In this document: positions 3,830 to 39,012 of the stretch, one piece after another | Numbering within the stretch: position 1 is the stretch's first letter | Layout of the letters: each line of letters begins with the position of its first letter | DNA from: Trichosphaerium sp. ATCC 40318 | Taxonomy: Eukaryota > Protista > Tubulinea | DNA length: 64,000 bases | Direction: 5' to 3' | Assembly: GCA_038496445.1 (NCBI GenBank) | Contig: JALMLS010000005.1 | Location: 1-64,000 of the forward strand | Notes under the pieces: model-generated | The model's input: the letters and a program-made list of their open reading frames with translations, nothing else | The model's database searches: none | Told to the model about the DNA's origin: nothing | Position numbers and translations under genes: made by a program

Positions 3830-4857
3830 CAGTGGTAAAATGAAAACGGGATTTTGGATATAAATCCCACTAAATTCCTTTGTTTTAGGATTTTTAAGGT
3901 AATTTGTGAAGAATTCTTATTTTTATTTTTTTTTATGGCAGGATTTTTGATAGAATTACCATAATATTCCCTTAAATACGGAATTTTCAGAATTATTGTA
4001 CAAAATCCACCAAATAATGTACTAATTTAGTTAGGGTTAGGGTTAGGGCTAGGGTTGAGGTTTATGAAAGTACAAATTTAGTTAGGGTTAGGGTTTAGTT
4101 TTATATTTGCAAAAAACCATCGACACCTAGATACATAGGTTTTTCTAGCGAACAATATCCACATGCTATTATTAAAGGTGAAAAAACCAATGGTACAGGT
4201 TAAAGTGCGTTAATCCAAAAAGTAACGGAGAACGCGTTTTAGGTGGTTTGGAAAATCACTTAAACATAAATATCTCTTACTTATCTGTTTTAGGATGATT
4301 AAAGCATTGCAACAGCCTTATTACACCATTAAAGAATGTATTTAAAGCATTAACTCCAAGTATGTTGTTTTTAAGCTTATTTCCACTTAATTATCAAAAA
4401 ACCCTACGTGTTCTTAATTTAGCGTTTACAAACGCATTAATTATTGTTCAGGCTCTCAAAAACCAAATGCGATCAAATTACTTCTTTCGTTTATGAAAAC
4501 ATGATGTATTTTACTTGTACGTATTATTTAAGATGTTTGTATTTTGTAATGATCAATAAATAAAATGACTTTGCATTAAATCTGAACCAAAGTATCAAAT
4601 AATATTTTGTGTAATTTATAAAGTATTTTTTATTGAAATCTACAAAAAATACATTAAGAAATGTTATAAAGAATACATAGAGAATTCTATATAAAATACA
4701 TACGCAATTCCAAAAGTAATACTCTAAGAATTCTATGAGTAATACTTACGGAAATTTCATATAATTCAATGGGAATTAAGGAAGAGTTTTTCCGTCTACT
4801 TTTCCCATAGGAAAACAGGGTGGATTACTTAAAAATTCCATTTTTATTTTACTACTG
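3830..4857. mobile_element. Probable non-autonomous DNA transposon (MITE-like) with degenerate ~26-bp TIRs
   Basis: CAGTGGTAAAATGAAAACGGGATTTT (3830-3855) vs reverse complement of 4832-4857, CAGTAGTAAAATAAAAATGGAATTTT: 22/26 identical, all four mismatches transitions. AA flanks both ends, ACGGAA(A/T)TTT-like motifs lie near both ends, and there is no ORF. Confidence 0.55.
4031..4096 (+). repeat. Short degenerate interstitial telomere-like (TTAGGG)n array
   Basis: ttagggttagggttagggctagggttgagg...ttagggttagggtttag. Confidence 0.85.
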
Positions 4858-5890
4858 AAGGCAAATGTCTTAAAGTCTATCAAAAAAAACATGTGATAAA
4901 GTTTTAATCCAAGCTAAAGCACTTTGTGTACAAGTTCAAAGGTTAAAAACTTCTTTTTGTAACACAATGTCAATAAATATTTATTTTCTTTCATTTTGAT
5001 TTGCCATGTGACATTTAGTTGTATTCTTGAATTTGTATTTTTGAGAAGCTGTGTAACATGAAATTTCTTCCAATTTTCAATGTGTTTTAAACTGTTTTGT
5101 TGTGGGTTTTAATGTGAAATTTCACAGTTTTTAAAGAGCAAACAATCTAAAAAAGTGTACACAATGGTTATTTGTTATTCAAAAAAAGTTTAATTTGAAG
5201 GGTATGCACAATATCTCATAAACATGAATAGATATGAAAATAAATAATATCTCATTATATAGTCATGTATTTATAAATATGAATTTAGTTTACAGTTTAA
5301 CTATACATGATATATTAAAAACTTTGTGTATATGAAAAATGTACATACATATTTTTTTGCAAAAAAAAAAGCCAATTACAAACTCAAAATTGCTTACATT
5401 TATATAACTCATCACTATGAATATTTACAAATTAATTATTGCTTGTACCATGTTTATATGACCTAATAACATATATATATACACATAAAGTACTTAAAAA
5501 TACATTTGTAAATGCAGTCTCCAAACACAACTGCATGGCAAAAATATCTCAAAATTTACAAAAAAAACATTTACATATCATTTACAGGCCATGCAATGCC
5601 CCAATATCATTTTTGATGATGTAAATCATAACAATACATGCTTTTTTCTAATAACACAAAAATAGCAAAATCTAATAAAATCAAAAAAATAATGAGTTAA
5701 GTAAGTTTAACTGTAAACACTATCTTGTTATGAAAGATACTTATGATAATTTTAACATTGAGATTAACTTGCAACAATCATTTAAGGCTTAAAAACATAT
5801 TTTGCATTTTCATAAAAGAACTTTGAGGACATATTTCTACTTTACTAAAGACATCATTTTTATTACACATTTAATTTATAATAGTGATAA

Positions 5891-5973
5891 CTAGGGTTAG
5901 GGCCTAATCTTGCCCTTCTTCGTAGGGCTAGGGTTAGGGTTACAACCCTAAGGTATATTAGGGTTAGGGTTAG
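5891..5973 (+). repeat. Short degenerate interstitial telomere-like (TTAGGG)n array
   Basis: ctagggttaggg...tagggctagggttagggttac...ttagggttagggttag; a further unit at ~6115-6135 is mirrored at ~3705-3726. Confidence 0.8.
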
Positions 5974-6072
5974 CACTAATATTTGTTTTATGCTTACATT
6001 GCAACCTCTGTACTCTTACGCTAACACTTGTTATTTTATTGTATGGTGTATGTTGTGTTGACCCTTTTTAGT

Positions 6073-13292: not shown

Positions 13293-16200
13293 CTAAAGTG
13301 CAACTTGTTTTGCTTTTTTAGAGGTCTTGGATGTTCCATTGGCACTCGAACGGTACCGCTTCTTTTTGGCACTTTCGTCACTAAAAATTAAAACAACTTA
13401 GATAAATGGCTTTTTAGATTGCTGTACGCACGCTTCTTCAATTGCTTGTATCTCTGCGCTTCTAGTGACTGCCATTGTCTGCAATGTGTAGTCCAAAATA
13501 AATGATTGTTGGTATAACTTGTCCATGCGCCTAGCGTGCCTTTCTGTATATGGAATCAAAGCGCGGAGAGCCTACGAAAAAGTGAACAATTTAGATTTTG
13601 ATTATTGTAATTGTCTGTTATGAACTGACCCGCTTTACATTTGCAACCTTAACTATACTTTCCACTTTGAATGTTGTCAAGATCTCTTTGAGCACCAACT
13701 GCGCAATAAATGATCGCTTTGCATTTGTATTCCAATCGCGAACATAGGTGAGGAGTCTTCCAACTTCTTCCAACGTCAAAGCACATACAATGAGATGCAG
13801 CTGGTCCTTAAACTTCTTTTCTTTTCTCTATAGAGAGGTTACTTGTAAGTAAAATTATCTATTGAGGCTATTTTAGGTACCAGCAACACTTCAAGGACTG
13901 TGTAACATCTAATGGGTTGCTCTAAGCCCAAAGCCAACATGAACGCTGCCTTCCACTGCTTATTTTTTAAGGCGTTGTCCAAGTCCTGTTTTTTTAATAC
14001 TAATCTATTCCGTTCCTGACGCGTTTGTCTTGTCAAAAAGTGTTAATGAAGGAAAAGAAAATACACAAAATGCAAATCGCACTTAGTTGTCTCCTCGGTG
14101 GCATCGTGTGAAATGACTAGTCCACCATCAGCGCCACCAGTGATGAATACGGACTCTTCTTCGTTCATCCAAAGTGCCCATATCTAAGTATCCACGTTTT
14201 AGTACATTAGTGGCCCAGTTTTAAATAATTGTACCCTATCATCATGTGGTTGTGTGGTACAAACACATTCGCGAGTTTTGAGTACCCACAGTTTGAGCAG
14301 GCCGTCGGAGCCACCAGATAACAATTGAGTACCCTTGTTCATAAAATCTAAGGTTAAGACAGATCCTGTGTGCCCCTGCAGGGTCTAAAAAGTTTGTGTA
14401 AGCAATCTGAAAATAATAATTGGATTGTTTACCGAAAGGCAATGTCCATCAGTATAACTCCATAAGCGTATTGTACCATCACCACTGGACAAAATGCATT
14501 AATACAGTAACTCGTGTAGTGCAATAGCAGTGCTTTGCATTTTGTGGGCACACTGGCGTACCTTCCCGAAGCAATGACTTTATCTGTCGGGGAGAATTTC
14601 AGTGCGTTCACCGCTCTGTTGTGACCTTCAAGTGAAAACTTCAATTTCTGTGTCTTAACGTCCCATAGTTTCAACGTTTTATCTTGTGATCCAGTGGCGA
14701 GAATTTTGTCATCTTTTGAAATGGCCATGGAGTGAATGACTTTGCGGTGAGGATGAATAGTTGCCAAACTGGATGTGTTGACATCAAGTTCGTCACTACA
14801 ATCCCAAAGCTTAACAGCAAGATCACGTGAAGCTGAGAACAATTTTGGAGAGTTGTTACAAAACACAATGTGAGTTACTGCTTCAGCGTGGCCTTGGAGT
14901 ACGCCTACTAATGACATGTTTTCAGTGCTGTACACCCTTATTGTCTTATCTTTACTAGCGGTTGCGAAGAACCCTTGAGGGTGTGTCGCAACAGCCAAGA
15001 TTACATCGCTGTGACCACGTATGAACTTGCATTTTCTTTCCACTTTTGCTTGTTCACCTTCAGTTTTGAGAGAGCATATACGAAGCTACAACAGCGTGAG
15101 AAGGCGTCAGAAATATAATTTAGTACCGATGCTGAGTTCGAGGCGAGCAGTAAACTCGATTGATATGGTGGAGGCATTGCTTTAATGTCCAATATCTGTT
15201 CGTTGTTTGCAGCAAAAGACCAAAGAAGCTCATTTGACTCCATAGACTGTGCGTAAAAGTTTTGTTCTTCAGATACACTCAAAACGGTATCGTTTGATGC
15301 GTACACGTGAAACAGAGGTTCATGTACGAGCTCATCATCAAAAGGCACTTCGGTTCGTTTACCAATATTCCACCGTCGCAATTTGCCTTGTTCGCCAACT
15401 GTACAGAATAAGCTATTACCCAATGCGTCTCTGACCCAACAACAACTTTCAATGACTTCGTAAGTAGGTATCATGAACATGCGTGTCATCTTTTTAAGAT
15501 CCCATGCAATAATAGTCTTATCTCTACCAACTGAAAGTATACGATCTTGGCGCGTTGTGAGAAAGCAAATATCAGTGACTTGATCAATGTGACCCTTCAA
15601 CTCCCCTATTTTCTTTCCTTGGCGAAGGTCGAAGAGTTCAATGATTTGACCACTGCAACAAAATAGATTGTATTGCAAAGATTTTTCACCAAACCTACGA
15701 GTGTAAAATTACTTGACTTGTGCTTTTTGTTTTTTGTAGCGTTTATGTTGAAAGCAAAAGAAAAAAAAAAAAAAAAAAAAAACAATGTTTAGTACGTACT
15801 TCATTAATCGTACTATATCGGACACACTAAAGGCGTGCGTTTGATAGTATTTTTTACCGTCAAATATCTTGAGTTGACTATTAACAAAAGCAGTCGCAAT
15901 GAGAGGACCAGCTGCAGGACCACCCAGACACACAGCAGACATCATAGAATTTCCAGTTTTGAAGTTGTGAAGTTCGTGCCATTCGTCGTCTGTAATATTG
16001 TCGTATATAGTGAGCTAGGAGTTTTTGTGAGCGTGGGAGAAAAATATGACATGTTTTTGTTTTTTCTTTTACAGTTTGAAAAAAAAAAAAACAGTTGTAA
16101 AAAACGTACTGTACTTGGTTGCGTTGCAACAGCGGCCAATCCATTCTCGTGCATGCCCACCGCTGTAACTGCGGCACTCTAAACGAATCTTAGATTTCAA

Positions 16201-28387: not shown

Positions 28388-31300
28388 TTAATGACTCATT
28401 GAACTTGTTCTTCTCACCAAAGAAGGAGGTTGCCTCCTCTTATGGCTCTTTGATCGCTTGTGTCTTCTACTTTTAGGAGGCTTTGACTCTTCCTTTGCTG
28501 TATTTCCCTTTGAGCTTGATTTGTTTGATGTATCGCTCTTTTCAGACACTACAGACTTTGGAGACCTCAAGGAGCTCTTACGCTTACGCTTCTTCTTCTT
28601 GCGGTCACGTTTCTTAACTACAGCAAGCTTATCCTGCTTGTTTGGATCTTCCTGTTCAAAATCGGAAGGAGCACCACCCTGAGACACTGATTTTCTATGG
28701 GTTCTTTCACTGCTAAAATTGCTACGTCTTGCTAGCGATGTAGAAAGTTCTAGGTTGCTTTGTGATATACCTTTACCTCTTAATACGCTATCAAGTGAAG
28801 TAGGCGTAAAGGTAGTAGGTAGGGATCGAGTGTGGTAGTTAAAAGGCTTTGAAGTGTTACCAAGGCTACTGTTATTAAGTAGCGTTGAGAGTAAGTCTCC
28901 TCTACTGTCCTGAAGATCCATATTGGACACAGACAACCTCATTGGTGGGCTGTTTTTTGATGCTAGCCTTGAAGGTAAACTAGCAGGAGCATTGATAGGA
29001 CTGGTAGACTTTCGGCTAGAAAACAAGGTTAATACAAAGTAGTAGATGGAGTGTATAAGTGTACTTTTTATTCGTCCACTTGACGCTTGATGGTTTGTAT
29101 GGATCAGACATAGAGGATACACGCGCTCTATCAGGGTTCACTTCTTGCCTATCAAATGATACTACACGTGGTGCATAACGCGTGTGCATTTCACGCAGTA
29201 ATCCAAAGTCAGTTTCTCCACCGCTAGTGTCAGCGCTGTGAAAGGTTTAGAACAAGATGATAATAGGGTAAAAGATTAGGTGTACCTGGATCCTGTACTG
29301 GAATTACTAAATGAACATGATTGCGAAGGTAATGACACATATTTTTCAGACTTTTTGAACTTATTGTTTGAGAGTGTGTCTAATCCTGACAATGAAACAG
29401 CTTTTGTTGAATTAGTTAAAGATACGGAAAGAGAAACAACCAACAAAAAAAAAAAGAGCGTACTTAATGGTTCCTCAAGGAGCGAGGCTCTATCAGGGAT
29501 AGCTGTCTTATGCTCAGAGCATACACGATGAAGAATTGTAAGCCATGCGTGAATCTTATCGAGATCCTTAAATCCAATATCCCACGTTTTATCTAAGCAA
29601 CCATTTAGTTTTTGTTCAAACTTTGGTAAAAAACCAAAAGCATTTTCTCTTACTTTGGCTTTCTATTGATAACACGAATGGTTGTCCTTTGACTTTCCGA
29701 ACGTATATTGTTGCACCAATTAATGGTACAATTTTAGATTGAGTTATCTTTCCTGGCTTCCAATACCGAAGATTGCCCCTACAATAATCACGTGAGTAAC
29801 AAAATCCTCTTCGAATGAAGCCAAGAAATACAACGTACTGTTTGGTAAATTCAAATCTCATACGCTTCCACGTGTATCTGCGAAAAGTTTTCTTCTTTCC
29901 AAACAGTAATACACCCTCTAGTACTTTACGTGTACGCGGGGTGATAACATCAATTGGCTGAGATAACCTACGGTCCTCTTTCGCTCTAGGCCGTACTGGA
30001 GATGAACCAGCACTACGTAACTTCTTTCTAGAAATCACACGCTTTAGTTGCTTCACTTCAGCATGTCGTCGTTGTTGAAACGAGCCCATACCAGTCACTG
30101 TTAACAAAAGAGATGTAAGTTTCATGTCGTGCAAGTATTAACAATAAGAGTCATGACGTGCCTACACCTGACGGTAACGTAATTGGTGTCAAACCAGTCT
30201 CACTAATTGTAAAAGAGTACGAGTACTCCCTTGATGGTGTCTCGCGAAATCCACGAATCTCATCAAATTGGTTGCTTACTCTTTTGAATGCTTTTCGAAA
30301 TTCTGTAGGTGCATTCCGTCCTTCTTTCATTCTAGTAAACGGATATGGCTCTACAAAAGTAAACAACAGTAAGTATACTATATTTTCTTGTATTCTAACC
30401 TTTGCAAGAAGCAAGCAAGTGCCACAAGCTTTTATCGTTAATACGCTTTCTTCTAGCTTGAAGGCTTTGAACACGTCTATTAGCACGTTGTAAATAAGGA
30501 TTTATACAAGATCGTAGAGATCCGACAAGCATGGCTGAGTTTTCATCTATTTTGTATAAGTATACATACACGGTGTGGTAACGTTTTCGTACCAATCTCT
30601 AATTTGAATGGACAACCCTCTAGTTGGAAACCACCTACAGCTACAGTGCAGGAGTGATCTCCAGCAACAAGTGGCATAAAATTTACTACTACCATATTTC
30701 GTCCATCTTTTTTAACAGTCTGTAATGCGTCAGTTGGTTTTGGTTCATTCTCACGTACAAAGTTAATGAGGCGTCTAGTCGGTGGTGGTTCTGTTATCGA
30801 TACAGTCACATCCTTTGTTCTTGTATCTCCACCAACAACAATCTTAAAGTGTTCTCGTTTGCCAGCGGTCAAAACACGTGAAGGCATCACAACCCTCGGT
30901 ACGCGTAATTTAGTCTCCGTGTCAGAGTCTGAGTACCCTCTGTGCAACGTGCTTGCCATATCATCTGTACTTAGACTAGAACCGTCATCAAAGTCCTGTA
31001 TAATTATCAGTACACAACACTTATGTTGGGGAAAAAAGATGACCGTACCTCTAAACCTGAGAAATCTAATGGCTTTGAAGATACATCTACAATTTGAACA
31101 CGTTTGAACTGTTCGAGCTCAAGTGAACGACGAAGTTGTTTGTTCTTATTCATAGATTTTCTAATGTGTGAACGAGGTATCATAGAGCTATTGAGCCGCT
31201 TTAACTTTTTCTTTTTGCTTGGACTGGAAGACTTTGTTACTGTGTAGCGTCTATTACCATCTGCTGGAATTGATTCTGCACGTGACAGTACGTTTGGATC

Positions 31301-34300
31301 TATATTTGCCCTCTTTGATAGACTAATGGCTGACTTTGCAAAACTTGAAGTTCCAGTACCAACTGGGCTTGGAGGTTTATGGCTTGATTTACGACGTGAA
31401 GTTGTGGCCATCTTGACGCTTTTCTGAGGACGACTTGATTTCCTCTTTTTCTTACCAGCACGTGAAGTCCTGCTTCGTGCTGGAGAACCTGTTCTTATCT
31501 TTTCGCTATGAAGGAGTGGTACAGGTCGCGATTTCTTTCTGCTTTTCGAACGTGGGCCACCTGTTTTTCTCAATTTCTTGCCTTCCTTCACTTTCTTCAT
31601 CGCAACATTTTTTGCAGACTTTGGAGATAATGGAGATGTATCTCTAGCGTCAATATTTGTAGCATCACCAATGACAACCTTCTTGAAAACGGGAAGATTC
31701 GAGTTGGAATCGCGTGGTGAAGTGGCTTTTGATTTTTTTGATTTGGCGATAGTTGGTGCTTGGATTGAGTCAATTGATACAGAAGACTCATTTGATTCCG
31801 TAGACTCACCACTACGATTTGCATTGCTGGTTATGCGCATACGGGCGGCGCGCCTACGTGGTGATTTTCGAGGAGAAAGCTTCATCTTGCTCCGTGCAGA
31901 CTTCCTGGGCGACTTGCGAGGTTTTTTCTTTCTAGAGCGTACTTTTGGACTCTTTAATGCTTTGGCCTTGTCTGCTGATGCCTCAACAATTGGGGTTGCT
32001 TCAGTGCCGATAACCTCAGCAGCATACGTGTCAATGTTAGTGTCGACTAATACCTCCGTGCTTGGATTGGCTTCTGAGCTAGTATCCGCAGCATCATCTG
32101 CATTAACCGATACCTCGGCACCTGGGTTTGATTTGCTTACAATGTCCTCAGTTGCATCTGTATCAACACAGCCATCAACGGACGCTGCTGTAGTTGGCTT
32201 TGCTTTGTCAATAACCTCAGCGGGGTATGTATCAGCATCTGTGTCAACTAATACCTCCGTTACTGGCTTATCTTTAGAGCTAATATCCTCAGTAGCATCT
32301 GTGTCGACACCTCCATCGATTGATTTCATTGTGCTTGGTGCAGCTTTGCCGTCTGTCTCCACGCTATCTTTTGTTTCCGATTCTTCAGAATTGGATGACA
32401 AATCTTCATCTTCAGACGTATCTGCATCTGTACTGCTATTTTGCTGTTCCAAACTGTTTGTGTCATTGTCTGCTGTATTTTCGACGAATGCCAAACACTT
32501 ACCAGTTATCTCGCCTTCCTAAACGCTATGTAAGAGAATTGATCATACACGGGATCATACAGTGAGCCTACGAAGGTATTCTTCCAATATTACTAGTGTT
32601 TCATTACCGACAAACAATTTTGTATTTCCGAATGCCACCCTATCTTCTGGAATACCAATATCCTCACATAGACTCTTCACAGCTTCTTTAATATCGCTGG
32701 AGTGCAATGATAAACTCCTTGGTGATATAGCAACAGAAAATCTATACAAAGTGTGAAAACGTGTTACAAAAAAAATGATGAACTATACCGTTGATAGAAC
32801 AATTTGTAGTCTTGATAAGCAGACCATGCTCGCTTGGCAAACTTGGCTGTTGCAACCAATCTCCAGGACCTTGAACAACTTGTAAATCTTGTACAATATT
32901 AAGTAGTCACGTACTTTATCTGCTTGGCAACAGATACAGCATCCACAATTCTTGGCACTTTGAAATTGTTTGGTTTTATGCATCGTACATAATGGCAGGA
33001 GGTATCACCAATTGTTCTCAGAAGCGAATTAAGAGATTCTTGAAACTGTGCTGTGACACTTGAAAACTTAAATGTGCCTTGACCTACTGCTTGAGCACGT
33101 CTAGGGCTAGCCTCTAATCACATATAAATAAAAGTTGTTTCTTTTTGTACTATTCAAACCTATGGGTGTTGCCGAAAATGAAGCAATAAAAGTATTGGTA
33201 CTCTTAATCATCAACCTACAATAATAAGTATTACACAGTACAGATTTAAAAAAACCACCTACCTGGTTTGTTCAACAATAACAAAATCTTTGTTTTTTTC
33301 CATGAATCTGTCGCCGTCATATGATACTATTCATCAAAGTTAAACAGAAAATAAGTTAATAAACCGTACTTTTCCCAGCAAAGTGTTCAATTGTGAAGGT
33401 TGTTCTACCGAAGCGCGATTTGGAGTATATTTTGTTTTCTGCAAAAGTACCATTCAACTTTGTCATAAAAGACTCTGTTGTCCCAGTACGAAACCTAAAA
33501 AAACATAAAAAGTGATGAACGTCACTTGATGACAATACCTGCATTCATCATCGAGTACGCCTAGTATGCCAGGTAAAGCGTCTGCGCCTTCTATGGTATC
33601 AATGCATTCCTAAATACACTGTTATTAAAAGTAATTGGCGTGCAAACATTACTTGGTTGTCAGGTAATTGTTGTGCTTCCCAGCCAATCTCCTCGCTTTC
33701 GAACATGCGTTGTGTTCTGGACACATAGTCATAGTACTAATCAAAAATAAGAATAAATCGCTCGATAAAATATCACGTGCCTGGTGCTGAAGTTTTTCAT
33801 TGGCGTAATTTACACAAAATTGTTCCAAGCTATTTACTTTGCGAGTCTCAAAACCATTAATGTTAAGAATACCAATGACTTGTTTGTGATCTTCTGCAGG
33901 TGCTATTGCATCATTGACAGCTTTTACAATCCTGGTACAGTAGATTAGATGAATTTAAAGACAAAGCGCTACTGTACCAATCAAAGGTCCTTTGGTAGAC
34001 CCACATCGCCAAGGAATCACGGGCATTATATGCTTCATCCTTACTTAGAAATATATCAAAACTCTCGCCATTCATGACTACTTGACGTTGTGTCATAGAG
34101 GCCAGTAAATCATTTGCAGGTACGCCCTTTATAAAAAAGTTAGGGTAGTGCTTATAAAGAATGATATAACGCACAAGTAATTCTGCAGCAAACTGTAGTG
34201 GTTCATCATCAACAAGGGAAACAGATTCTTTGGATTTCTTGGTAAATTTAATATTTCCAACATGAAGTATGCCAGCCAAAGCTCTTACACCAAACATTAG

Positions 34301-36586
34301 TTGCTAATACACTATTCTGCATACCTATACAACCCAAGGATATCATCTTCACTAAAACCCAAGGCAACAAAGCCATCAGTTATTGCTTTGAAGTCTTGCG
34401 CATCCTTAGCCTACGAGTATTAGTTTACTACAAAAACTGGCTGGCCTGTACCTCTGTGTGACCTGAGCGAAGGTACTGATAGTTCCCTGCAGAAGATATA
34501 TTCCATTGATTCCTCTGTTCTTGGCTTGCACCAGCACACAACTAGGTTATGTGATAAGTACAAAATTACATGACCATTGTAGTCATACTTGATAAAATAT
34601 ATGGAAGCAGCGCTCATTTTGTTCTCGTCGTACTACCCTAAACTTTTCCAACATGTACGTCTTAATTTCTCCCCCAATAATATTATTCTTCTTGTCGAAC
34701 AGGAGCCTTGTGAATCGTCCAAAACGAGAAGAGTTATTGTTATGTAATGTCTTAGCATTACCAAATGCTATAAAATTTTAACAAAACATTGTTACAATAG
34801 TACTACGCACCTTCTATTACAGCGAGACCACTCAATAATTTCTTTGTTATTGATGCATCCTGACTTGCAAAGCCAGTCAAGAAGTGTATTATATGCTTTC
34901 CTACAATTGCTAGACCTGGTTGAGGTGTAAGAAATCATAAAAATATACTCATAAACCCTACCAGAGCCAGCTTCACCACTCACTAAAATTGATTGATCCC
35001 GATCTATTGAACAATCAGCACTATAGAGACAGAACGAATAGACGTACTAGATACCCTCATTTTCCAATATGCGAATGAGGCTATATCATACACGTGTGGA
35101 GGTAAGCCGGGTTTATAAGGAACATATTTACGCTGCTCTTCTTCGTTATGTTGTTCAGAATCAGAAAAAGGATTAAGAGCTTAATGCAGGATGTCAATTA
35201 TCAATTATTCTTGAATTAACTTGTAGCTTACCAACAAGGACAGGTCCAATATACGTATAATTATTTGATTGGTTGTATCGGCTCCTCAATTGATGAAGAA
35301 TTCCTGGTTCATGCTAGAATTCCAAATGTTAGAGAATTCACAAAATCAGGCTGCCTTTTTCGGGTACGTACCAAAATTGGTAGATTGATCAGATTATTGG
35401 CGTTTACAGTAGACATACGGTTGAATTTATATGCACGCGCTTTATCAACATTAAACGTTGTCCTAAGGAGCTTCCTTGAAGCTTCCGATACCTTCAAAAA
35501 AGCCGTAAAAACGTGAACTATGACCATGTAAACAAATAGCAATACCTTTCCAAATATTGTATCAGAATCCACTATCAACGTAGCCAACACTGTCAATAAT
35601 TCATCTGACTGAGAAGAATTATTTGTACAAAGCAAACAAGGCGCAAATAATTTTGTCATTATCTCCAACGCAGGCCCAGAGCTTTGTTCTTTACAATAAC
35701 GCCTTAACAATAGCGTTAGAAAACTATTTTGATCAAAGAAAAAAAGTACCGGCAAAATTCCAGTACACAATTTGAACAATGCAATTCATGCTTTGGTAGC
35801 GTTGAAATAATCACTTGTAACGCAGTGATAAGCTCTTCTCTATCGAGTTTGCCTAATAGGAAATTTGAGTTTGAAGAAAGTCCGTTCGGGTAATATCATG
35901 CGTACGGCTGCCAAGCGTTGTTAATTGTACAACGCAATCTGCTAGAAGCAATCGTGGCAAGCTTGCCAGAAAGTAAAAAACCAAAGCAATTACAACATTT
36001 GAGCTTGTTGACGGAGGAATCTCAAGTAAACCTTGGGTGTTGTATTTAGCGGCTTGATTATTTATTGAAATAGCAAATAGGGCCAAAGCATAAAATTAGT
36101 GACGTTACCTTCTTTGATGCCATCAACCAGCGCAACCACATCTTGTAGCGGTGCTGGTGGCGCGAAAAACAATTGCGAGTCTTGTAATGCTACTTATAGA
36201 TGAGTAAACATAGAATTGCTTGAGATGAGTTACCGTTGTTTGTTAGAAATGAAATTGCTCGTTGCAAAATGACTGGAACAACCACGTTATCACTCCGAGC
36301 CAATAAAGAGAGCGGTACTCCAAAAATCCCTTGTTTTGCAGGCTATACAAGTGTGAGGGTGTAATAATACGTATAAAACAAACAAGTCATTGTTTTATGT
36401 GTCTGCACAATATTCGCCTCTGAGGCCATGTGTGAACTCTAGTATCGTAGTTTGTACCTGTTTTGTCCGTAGTGTAACAGTTATCTCGCCGTTGTCTGAA
36501 AAAGATTCAATGTCTGCTAGAGCGTAACCATAGTTGGCCTGGACCCAAACGGGCTCGTTTTCAGTATTTATTTCCAGTTTGCTCAT
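28388..36586 (-). CDS. Large unconventional myosin: SH3-like N-terminus, RhoGAP-like domain, myosin head, acidic repeats, basic region, filamin Ig repeat, PH domain
   Basis: FGVPL...VPVILQRAISFL (RhoGAP); LHEPGILHQLRSRY...YTYIGPVLVALNPF, PPHVY, AFGNAKTLHNNNSSRFG, SLEQFCVNYANEKLQ, FTIEHFAG, FGNTKLF (myosin); AGDHSCTVAVGGFQLEGCPF (filamin); EGVLLFGKK...WKRMRF...W (PH). The head splices in frame to the 495-aa ORF. Confidence 0.85.
31975..32330 (-). repeat. Coding tandem repeats (~23/46 aa, acidic) in the myosin tail
   Basis: SIDGGVDTDATEDISSKDKPVTEVLVDTDADTYPAEVI / SVDGCVDTDATEDIVSKSNP / PSTEVLVDTNIDTYAAEVI. Confidence 0.8.
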
Positions 36587-36745
36587 TTTGCAGCAAAGTT
36601 GTCAAATCCCTGCTGTTATACATGTATATCATGTAAATCTTTTGCTGTCAGCCGTTGCTGTATTTTCTTTTATTGTAAAAGTCAAGCGCGATGAATTATG
36701 CTTCTTGCGGTAAATATTTTCTGCTTTTACAACGTACTACTTACA

Positions 36746-39012
36746 ATGGCGTTTCGCCTTGCTAGGCGCTTGCAATGTGCGTCCAATACGTTACGCACTA
36801 TGCACGTAAACAAAATAAGAAAGACGAAGAGTAAGATTCCTTTGTTCATTTTGAGTTACTAATAAAACGCTAGGGGCGATATCGCAATGGACAGTTCCTG
36901 ACGGCGCTAAAACTGATTTAAAACTGTACAATTCGCTCTGTCCTGGAGAAAAAGCGCGTATATAACGTACAGAATCATAATAACGCCTAAAAGGTGCCGC
37001 TTGTACTTATTGACGCCAAACGTCTTAAATGGTACTCATGCGGTCCAACAGTTTACGATCATTCACACGTTGGACACGCTCGGTACAGTGTTGCTAAAAA
37101 AAACCGTGAAATCATCCATTCTAATTCAAAAGTAGAACATACGTAACCATAGACATCATACAGCGTATACTACATAGTTTCTTCAATATTTCGGTTGAGC
37201 ACGTGATGGGCATTACTGACAGTGCGTCTTACTAAACTCACACTAAGACCCACTATATTTAGTTGATGACAAGATTATAACAAGGGCCAAGGAGGCCAAA
37301 CAACCTGTTAGGGATATTGCACGTAAATTTGAGAGCGAGTACTGGAATGATCTCAAAGACTTGAATGTATGCAACAACTTATGCCACAATACCGAAAAAA
37401 AGCTTATTATTTTTACTGTCCTTTAGGTTTCAGCTCCTAATGTATCGTGCCGTGTTACCGACCACTTAGATGAGATAGTCGACTTTATAGAACGTATAAA
37501 GGAGAAGGGCTTAGCCTACGAAAGCAACGGATCAGTCTACTTTGACAATGGAAAGTTTGGAACCCGTGCTAGTCCATTGGAGCACTTTGGTGGTACAGGA
37601 GATGATCCTTTGCCAGGTAAAATATATCATTTGCAACTAGAATCACCCTTACGCTCTTTCAGTCACTGGAAGCGAAAAAAAAGACCCAAAGGACTTTGTA
37701 CTTTGGAAAGCTGATAAGAAGGATGGTTCTATTGTATTTCCTTCACGGTATGGCCCTGGTAGACCTGGATGGCATATTGAATGCTCAGCAATGTCTTCTT
37801 TGTATTTTGGAGACCAATTTGATATTCACGCAGGCACGTGAAGTATAATGAGCAACGCAAGTGATCAAAAAACAAAAGCAGTTGTAGAGTTGTTTGATTG
37901 TTTTCATAACACATGCCATAGGTGGGTTAGATCTTGCATTTCCTCATCACCACAATGAAATAGCTCAATCTGATGCTTGTTTTGGTCATGGTCACGGAAA
38001 TGATAGGAACTGGGTTAATTACTTTGTTCATGTTGGTCCTTTAACAATAAAGGGACACAAAATGTCAAAATCACTAAAAAACTTTATAACAATACAGGCA
38101 CGAGTAGTATTAATCCAATACGTACTTATATTTATGGGTTATTAGGAACTACTTAAAACATATACAGCAGATGATTTTAGAATGTTCTGTTTGGCAACGA
38201 GTTACAACATGCCTGTAGAATACACAAATGACAACTTGGATTACGCACAAAATCTTAATAGAAAGTTTGCAGATTTCTTTGATCTTGTGGCACATCACAC
38301 AAAGAATCAAGATCATCTCGACACCAAGTGGACAGAGGTAGAATTCTCGCTGTCGAGACTGTAAGTAGTGTAGCACCCTCGGAACAACAGTTTTCTAAGT
38401 GTTTATGTATAGGTTAAGCGAGACTCAGTCGAAGACTCATGACTTCTTGTTGGATTGTTTTAATACATCCGAAGCGTTAAAACAATTACAAGAGCTTGTA
38501 AGCCAGACAAACAAATACTTACTTAGTGAAATGCCAAAATCAGTAATGCTACTAAACAACATTACTTCTTATATTATAAAAATACTTAAGTGCTTTGGAC
38601 TGTCAATTACACAGTACGCAGGCTTTTCTAGCTTTTTTTCGAAGGTGGTAATGTTGTACTAACATAGTCTCAAAGGCAAACAAAGTCCGGCCAAGGATCC
38701 ACATCTGCTTCTGACGCTGATGTCGTGGATTGTGTCGTAAAAGTACTACAGTTCATTTTATTATTGATTTATTAACCAGCGCATTAGTTCCGTGCCAAAG
38801 TGCGTAAGACTGCTATCACAACCCCAAAAGGAAGTATTGAAAAGGATGTCAAAAAAACAATTTTAGTAGAATGCGACACAATTAGAGATCAATTAGCTCA
38901 ACACGGCTACTTCTTGAAGGTAAACACCGCTAACATGTTTCTTCTAACTATTAAATAGGACACAAAGGAGCACGACACAATAGTGTCGAGAGAACCGCTT
39001 AATAAAAAATAA
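36746..39012 (+). CDS. CARS2: Cysteinyl-tRNA synthetase, probably mitochondrial (CARS2-like)
   Basis: Basic presequence [11 protein letters not shown]; [18 protein letters not shown]; [44 protein letters not shown]. Confidence 0.92.

Follow-up and report, generated by a model that had tools for sequence, protein, structure and literature searches.

An intact myosin-fold gene of Trichosphaerium sp. ATCC 40318 that probably no longer encodes an ATP-driven motor

Introduction

A minus-strand gene on contig JALMLS010000005.1 of Trichosphaerium sp. ATCC 40318 (Eukaryota; Protista; Tubulinea; NCBI GenBank assembly GCA_038496445.1) encodes a full-length myosin head that has lost the lysine and threonine of the P-loop and the aspartate of switch 2. 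We analysed positions 1 to 64,000 of this contig (64,000 nucleotides (nt), hereafter the window), which reads as eukaryotic DNA with many short introns and has a guanine-plus-cytosine (GC) content of ~39%. In our reading, to which we assign a probability of roughly 0.55, this is an intact nuclear gene of an amoeba-like protist, and its product is a myosin-fold protein that has ceased to be an ATP-driven motor and probably serves as a passive actin anchor.

Myosins that do not hydrolyse ATP are represented by very few measured cases—mainly myosin-18—and are mentioned only in passing in large surveys. A natural head that lacks the Walker A lysine and threonine while keeping switch 1, the relay and the fold would offer a clean test of a head locked out of the nucleotide cycle, and its pairing with a RhoGAP-like domain devoid of an arginine finger suggests a route by which Rho-family signalling could be coupled to static actin attachment.

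Results

Loss of catalytic residues from the nucleotide pocket

Three-frame translation gave a chain of open minus-strand segments that read as myosin. The gene model was rebuilt from the raw sequence by enumerating GT-AG and GC-AG introns between neighbouring open segments and retaining junctions that kept the frame and were free of stops. The resulting gene comprises 26 exons and 25 introns, encodes 1448 amino acids and contains no frameshift and no internal stop. The features on which the main finding depends are as follows:

31007 to 36586, minus strand: whole gene (ATG 36586–36584, stop 31009–31007; 1448 codons plus stop)
32561 to 35491, minus strand: exons 7–25, residues 244–945, motor through to the converter end ...LVILEEYLRRLT, identified with Pfam Myosin_head and phmmer
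34908 to 34977, minus strand: P-loop GEAGSG-LA, split by an intron (codons in 34977–34962 and 34915–34908)
34715 to 34741, minus strand: switch 1 NNNSSRFGR, kept except that the final lysine after SSRFG is arginine
33847 to 33864, minus strand: switch 2 NINGFE, with asparagine (AAC) in place of aspartate and the glycine, phenylalanine and glutamate kept

Register in the pocket was set by a MAFFT alignment with 26 full-length myosins taken from the exon-12 search described below. Exon 10 (35003–34962) ends in ...RDQSILVSGEAGS and the first base of a glycine codon, a 46-nt intron follows (34961–34916, GTAGGG...CAG), and exon 11 (34915–34811) starts G|LAIVGKHIIHFL, so that the spliced P-loop context reads SILVSGEAGSG-LA-IVGKHIIHFL. 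GEAGSGLA occupies the place of the catalytically competent motif GESGAGK[ST], with leucine (CTA) for lysine and alanine (GCA) for threonine in two columns that show no variation among the reference myosins (26/26). The switch-2 motif DIxGFE has likewise been altered to NINGFE at an aspartate column conserved in 26/26 references; the asparagine codon is one base from aspartate, and the switch-2 exon (33930–33781) aligns gap-free to solved myosin Va chains (IGILNINGFET against IGVLDIYGFET). Switch 1 conforms to NxNSSRFGK in all but its last residue, and the relay, LEQFCVNYANEKLQ, is kept. At pocket columns conserved in 24–26 of the 26 references, the substitutions are S366A, A368S, K370L and T371A in the P-loop, K421R immediately after SSRFG, D631N in switch 2, and F638R.

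Sequencing error as the source of the lysine loss was considered and rejected, because CTA lies at least two base changes from any lysine codon. Nor can splicing restore the Walker A lysine and threonine, since no junction and no minus-strand frame within 34600–35250 gives GK[ST] (or, as a search of the same frames showed, G[AS]GK or K[ST]E). The sole other in-frame acceptor, at 34910, drops two residues to leave GEAGS-AIVGKH, and the other in-frame donors at this junction cut away residues of the P-loop itself. A search of the PDB with exon 11 returned no match.

A first-pass annotation of this DNA, made from the letters alone, had proposed the two P-loop replacements in canonical register, the loss of the switch-2 aspartate, the retention of switch 1 and the relay, and the absence of an IQ motif after the converter; each of these is borne out by the alignment and by the rebuilt model, which also places an intron that it had put at about 34916–34962 at 34961–34916. 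It had named two outcomes that would undo its reading, namely splicing that restores GKT and an unexpressed gene in decay: the genomic sequence offers no splice choice or frame for the former, and, as to decay, the gene is intact, with an unbroken frame and no visible lesion.

Uneven conservation across the motor domain

Membership of the Pfam family Myosin_head is secured by three exons that each exceed the cut-off of 33.3 bits on their own (92.8, 57.6 and 42.7 bits), together with five weaker colinear pieces. Across the motor, the gene keeps 74 of the 88 columns conserved at ≥90%. The nucleotide pocket accounts for half of the 14 changed columns, and of the seven changes elsewhere five are conservative (Leu/Ile, Leu/Met, Ile/Val, Phe/Tyr), which leaves Pro400Ala and Gly861Arg as the non-conservative changes outside the pocket.

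Regional conservation, scored as match to the ≥70% consensus and compared with the median of the other 26 motors, was distributed as follows:

N-terminal subdomain: gene 0.84, median 0.83; ordinary
Upper 50K: gene 0.83, median 0.85; ordinary
P-loop to switch 1: gene 0.69, median 0.94; lowest of the 27, the minimum among the others being 0.81
Switch 2 to relay: gene 0.73, median 0.90; near the bottom
Lower 50K and SH region: gene 0.73, median 0.87; near the bottom
Converter: gene 0.60, median 0.90; near the bottom

Because conservation is uneven between regions and the frame is unbroken over 26 exons, the pattern looks like that of a fold still under constraint from which the chemistry and the force-transmission path may have been released, and unlike uniform decay.

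A divergent RhoGAP-like domain upstream of the motor

The exons ahead of the motor encode a region that remotely resembles the RhoGAP domain (GAP, GTPase-activating protein), recognised with local hidden Markov models (HMMs), hhalign and an Atlas feature search:

35546 to 36342, minus strand: exons 2–6, residues 44–243, remote RhoGAP-like domain (RhoGAP-like region at residues 47–243)

A local HMM of the myosin-IX GAP domain scored 12.8 bits, matching residues 127–221 to model positions 59–155; none of 2000 shuffled sequences reached this score, the highest attaining 6.1 bits. A broader RhoGAP HMM built from 91 sequences scored 11.6 bits, again unequalled in 2000 shuffles (highest 8.2). Weakly, hhalign placed residues 49–79 on the start of the RhoGAP domain. 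In the Atlas feature search with exon 6, RhoGAP clusters came out best and the ten best family-bearing matches belonged to one family or clan, at a score (0.88) that we treat as a lead only. Pfam found nothing on the separate exons of this region, where the gathering score of PF00620 is 24.5 bits, and a PDB search with the GAP-like exon 2 gave no match. Judged on these profiles, the domain would be very divergent, and we call it RhoGAP-like without assigning it to the family.

In the colinear alignment, the first half of which is weakly supported, QLFFAPP stands opposite the arginine-finger motif GIYRKSG, and no arginine occurs between residues 71 and 141. The catalytic asparagine of the NLA motif is aligned with isoleucine or glutamate, depending on the alignment. 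If the region does adopt a RhoGAP fold, then it is predicted to be non-catalytic, because both the arginine finger and the NLA asparagine are replaced.

The converter end and a bipolar tail

Neither a strict nor a loose pattern search found an IQ motif anywhere in the 1448 amino acids. The converter end LEEYLRRLT runs directly into an acidic segment, with no lever arm of IQ motifs between them. A 42-nt intron follows the converter and is succeeded by a single last exon of 1512 nt (503 amino acids, disordered), which divides into two halves of opposite charge:

31970 to 32518, minus strand: acidic half of the tail, residues 946–1128, rich in Asp, Thr, Ala and Ser, net charge −38, with loose VDTDA(T/D)... 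repeats
31007 to 31969, minus strand: basic half of the tail, residues 1129–1448 plus stop, rich in Ser, Lys, Arg and Pro, net charge +70, with five [ST]Px[KR] sites

The tail matches no Pfam family, has no homologue among 8000 scored candidates and gives no hint of coiled coil in its composition. Antisense to this low-complexity exon, a 314-amino-acid open frame extends over 31578–32522 on the plus strand; it is most likely a by-product of skewed composition and not a gene.

Support for the gene model

Intron 1 is 115 nt long and the other 24 introns measure 41–58 nt. Donors follow the consensus GTA(C/T)G, acceptors are TAG (15), AAG (8) or CAG (2), and GC content is 0.32 in introns against 0.40 in exons. 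One junction departs from GT-AG:

33737 to 33780, minus strand: the sole GC-AG intron in the model (GCACGT...TAG, 44 nt, GC donor at 33780)

This intron provides the only in-frame, stop-free junction of normal length between LQHQ and YYDYVSRTQ, where the ten other in-frame options would need introns of 68–191 nt, all of which remove conserved motor sequence. The splice choices gain independent support from Pfam, because the Myosin_head matches on eight separate exons are colinear and the profile ranges that they cover (11–37, 40–80, 138–196, 261–296, 298–345, 347–396, 452–492 and 552–604) abut.

Two points concern the start of the gene:

36458 to 36586, minus strand: exon 1, residues 1–43, with a by-eye likeness to the N-terminal SH3-like strands of myosins

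The SH3-like reading of exon 1 was set aside as unsupported: Pfam gave no match even when the exon was extended, and phmmer against 35 myosin N-termini returned E = 0.03. The junction of exons 1 and 2 is ambiguous, with either the 115-nt intron (donor 36457, acceptor 36343) or a 79-nt alternative (donor 36408, acceptor 36330) that adds 17 residues (VQTTILEFTHGLRGEYW) and loses PAKQG; neither choice touches the motor.

A cysteinyl-tRNA synthetase gene with short introns lies divergently alongside (36747–38700, plus strand), recognised by Pfam tRNA-synt_1e matches on open reading frame (ORF) pieces 36994–37143 and 37894–38142 and a weak DALR_2 match at 38399–38659. The start codons of these divergent genes are only ~160 bp apart, so the two probably have a promoter region in common.

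Relatives of the motor

The best motor relative was a DIL-tail myosin of Balamuthia mandrillaris (KAL6041784.1, here P0084), at 460 bits by phmmer and 36% identity over 685 columns; a Cavostelium myosin was also among the best. In P0084, an amoebozoan protein of class V/XI-like type, the P-loop and switch 2 are canonical and both IQ motifs and a DIL cargo domain are present, none of which holds for our gene, and no supported clade joins the two.

The first-pass annotation had proposed a motor-domain phylogeny as a check on a possibly new class. A quick maximum-likelihood analysis of 27 motors grouped our gene with no class, placed it in no supported clade and kept it apart from the class IX representative P0136; a tree of this size shows only that the gene would be no obvious member of classes II, V/XI-like and IX or of the MyTH4-FERM group. 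The same annotation had missed the upstream RhoGAP-like domain and the bipolar disordered tail, both of which alter the functional reading.

A search of 1.84 billion representatives with exon 12 gave 8010 matches, the best 150 of which were generic myosins with ≤68% identity over the 59-amino-acid exon; the P-loop was intact in every one of these 150 that was long enough to cover it. Metagenome scans with exon 23 and with exons 6–7 found no relative. No protein with the same substitutions emerged from the exon-12, tail or metagenome searches, the queries for which were exon-sized or the tail, so that these blanks are weak evidence.

Discussion

A head probably locked out of the nucleotide cycle

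In all P-loop NTPases the P-loop lysine and threonine hold the beta- and gamma-phosphates and Mg2+, and loss of the Walker A lysine generally abolishes nucleotide binding or hydrolysis. With these two residues and the switch-2 aspartate lost, the head should neither hydrolyse ATP nor bind it tightly. A nucleotide-free head would be expected to rest in a rigor-like state and, by analogy with Drosophila myosin-18, may tether F-actin, statically or dynamically, whether or not ATP is present; the ordinary conservation of the upper 50K region fits an ATP-independent actin tether, without proving it. With less support, and as speculation from architecture, the dead RhoGAP-like domain could act as a docking module for an active Rho/Rac-type GTPase in place of a GAP, and the bipolar, Ser-Pro-rich tail could make a second contact, tunable by phosphorylation, to membranes, to actin or to itself. 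The whole protein would then anchor actin, or cross-link it, where a Rho-family GTPase marks the site.

Comparison with known myosins

The closest functional parallel is Drosophila myosin-18, the head of which shows no ATPase activity, no ATP binding, ATP-insensitive actin binding and filament tethering without a power stroke, and for which a role as a dynamic tether or scaffold of actin has been proposed (PMC3122231). Our gene is predicted to share the loss of ATPase and ATP binding and the ATP-independent tethering, and like Drosophila myosin-18 it would carry an extra interaction domain N-terminal to the motor. The means differ: myosin-18 has a near-canonical P-loop (GRSGAGKS) with altered switches I and II, whereas here the P-loop lysine and threonine have gone and switch 1 is intact; and in place of the PDZ domain and long coiled-coil tail of myosin-18, our gene has a RhoGAP-like domain and a tail that is disordered, charged and without any Pfam family. 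Class XVIII is, moreover, a holozoan class (PMC3942036).

Class IX is the sole established myosin class that joins a motor to a RhoGAP domain (PMC3942036; P0136 is an example), and the paneukaryotic classification refers to RhoGAP solely in connection with the tail of class IX (PMC3942036). The class IX layout runs RA, motor, IQ, C1, RhoGAP, with an active motor and a competent C-terminal GAP domain (GIYRKSG). In our gene, by contrast, the GAP-like domain lies upstream and has no arginine finger, the motor appears dead, and IQ, RA and C1 are all missing. We therefore rejected class IX membership on grounds of architecture and of the tree, in which the motor stands apart from P0136.

Motor-like domains of the fungal Chs5 type lack the P-loop as well as switches I and II (PMC3276572), and the class 17B or Chs5-CsmB-type domains have been set aside as ‘divergent’ (PMC5583752). 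They resemble our gene in being a myosin fold without ATPase motifs that is kept in a functional protein (PMC3276572), but our gene encodes a motor of full length in which switch 1 and the relay are both intact. The statement in the first-pass annotation that inactive myosins are rare, with classes 18 and 20 as the examples, was on this showing understated, since the fungal Chs5-type domains (PMC3276572) and Limulus myosin-3, which is said not to bind ATP (PMC3122231), are also known.

ATP-insensitive myosin heads are thus already on record (Drosophila myosin-18, fungal class 17B) and the general idea is not new. What appears to be new is the combination predicted here: a full-length head that has lost only the Walker A lysine and threonine and the switch-2 aspartate, an upstream RhoGAP-like domain that has no arginine finger, a lack of IQ motifs and a charged orphan tail. 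One might go further and see in this gene the founding member of an undescribed, ‘doubly dead’ amoebozoan class, in which a pseudo-RhoGAP domain reads a Rho/Rac GTPase while an ATP-blind, leverless head locks F-actin, the whole forming a GTPase-addressed anchor built from retired enzymes; we hold this extended proposal to be a tentative one, with the odds against it. If orthologues exist, then the gene would add a new class and a new architecture to the catalogue of amoebozoan myosins; if they do not, its weight is modest and it is an oddity of one species.

Points against a passive actin anchor

Several considerations weigh against this interpretation. The RhoGAP similarity is weak, at 11.6–12.8 bits against the Pfam cut-off of 24.5, with no Pfam match on the separate exons. 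Constraint has been argued from the pattern within one sequence, and the searches found neither an orthologue nor a paralogue that shares the substitutions. The lower-50K and SH region (0.73) and the converter (0.60) are divergent too, which could mean a general relaxation instead of a specific loss. Splicing, the fusion of GAP-like domain to motor and expression are all predictions, as are actin binding, GTPase binding and the lack of nucleotide binding. Finally, the dead head of mammalian myosin-18A need not bind actin via its motor (PMC3122231).

Alternative explanations

Two alternatives strike us as unlikely, to a similar degree. According to the first, the gene has recently been disabled and is turning into a pseudogene, or was never expressed, and the catalytic losses are first lesions and not an adaptation. 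In its favour, no relatives were found for the tail, for the two metagenome exon queries or among the best 150 exon-12 matches, a look-up of RNA sequencing runs for 32500–36600 listed none, and the relay, converter and lower-50K segments fall below the median of working myosins. However, usable splice sites survive at all 25 introns, the 1448-codon frame is unbroken, 74 of 88 near-invariant columns are kept and most of the other changes are conservative. The pocket, moreover, has accumulated several independent changes, including a lysine-to-leucine replacement of at least two base changes, which implies a long time free of ATPase constraint, and over such a time a neutral gene would have gained stops or frameshifts.

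According to the second, our model is over-fused: the RhoGAP-like exons, the head and/or the tail exon would be carried on separate or alternative transcripts, for example a head-only product starting from the methionine in ...NRMSTVNANN.... The atypical length of intron 1 and its alternative junction speak for this, as do that in-frame methionine, which lies in exon 7 just ahead of the motor, and the lack of Pfam support for the tail and the GAP-like part in their own right. Yet no stop interrupts the spliced frame where the GAP-like exons meet the motor or where the converter meets the tail; the size and signals of introns 6 and 25, which make these joins, match those of the other introns; the last exon stays open for 503 codons in exact phase with the final splice, which would be unexpected by chance at 40% GC; and with only ~160 bp to the cysteinyl-tRNA synthetase gene, a start at 36586 fits a shared promoter region.

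Still less probable is a head that uses a non-canonical pocket to bind nucleotide, and perhaps to turn it over slowly, and so works as a regulated switch or strain sensor instead of a nucleotide-free tether: switch 1 (NNNSSRFG, with its arginine) and the switch-2 glycine and glutamate (GFE) are retained, GLAIVGKH is the only GxxxxGK string in the protein, and Drosophila myosin-18 presents the reverse mismatch, a near-canonical P-loop without ATP binding, so that motif state and nucleotide binding are not tightly coupled (PMC3122231), but the lysine of GLAIVGKH lies inside the helix after the P-loop, away from the phosphate-binding turn, the next residue is histidine instead of serine or threonine, and the general effect of losing the Walker A lysine stands against such a pocket. 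We likewise rejected GLAIVGKH as a shifted Walker A motif: it begins at the last P-loop glycine, five residues downstream of the canonical register, and its lysine aligns, with no indel, with an ordinary helix lysine (GKTExTK).

Other features of the window

An AT-rich island occupies positions 4001–6000, with a GC content of 0.27 against ~0.39 elsewhere, and contains a 23-bp tandem repeat of 4.4 copies (4635–4736). On the minus strand at 15001–15675, an ORF piece with matches to the WD40 beta-propeller forms part of another intron-containing gene.

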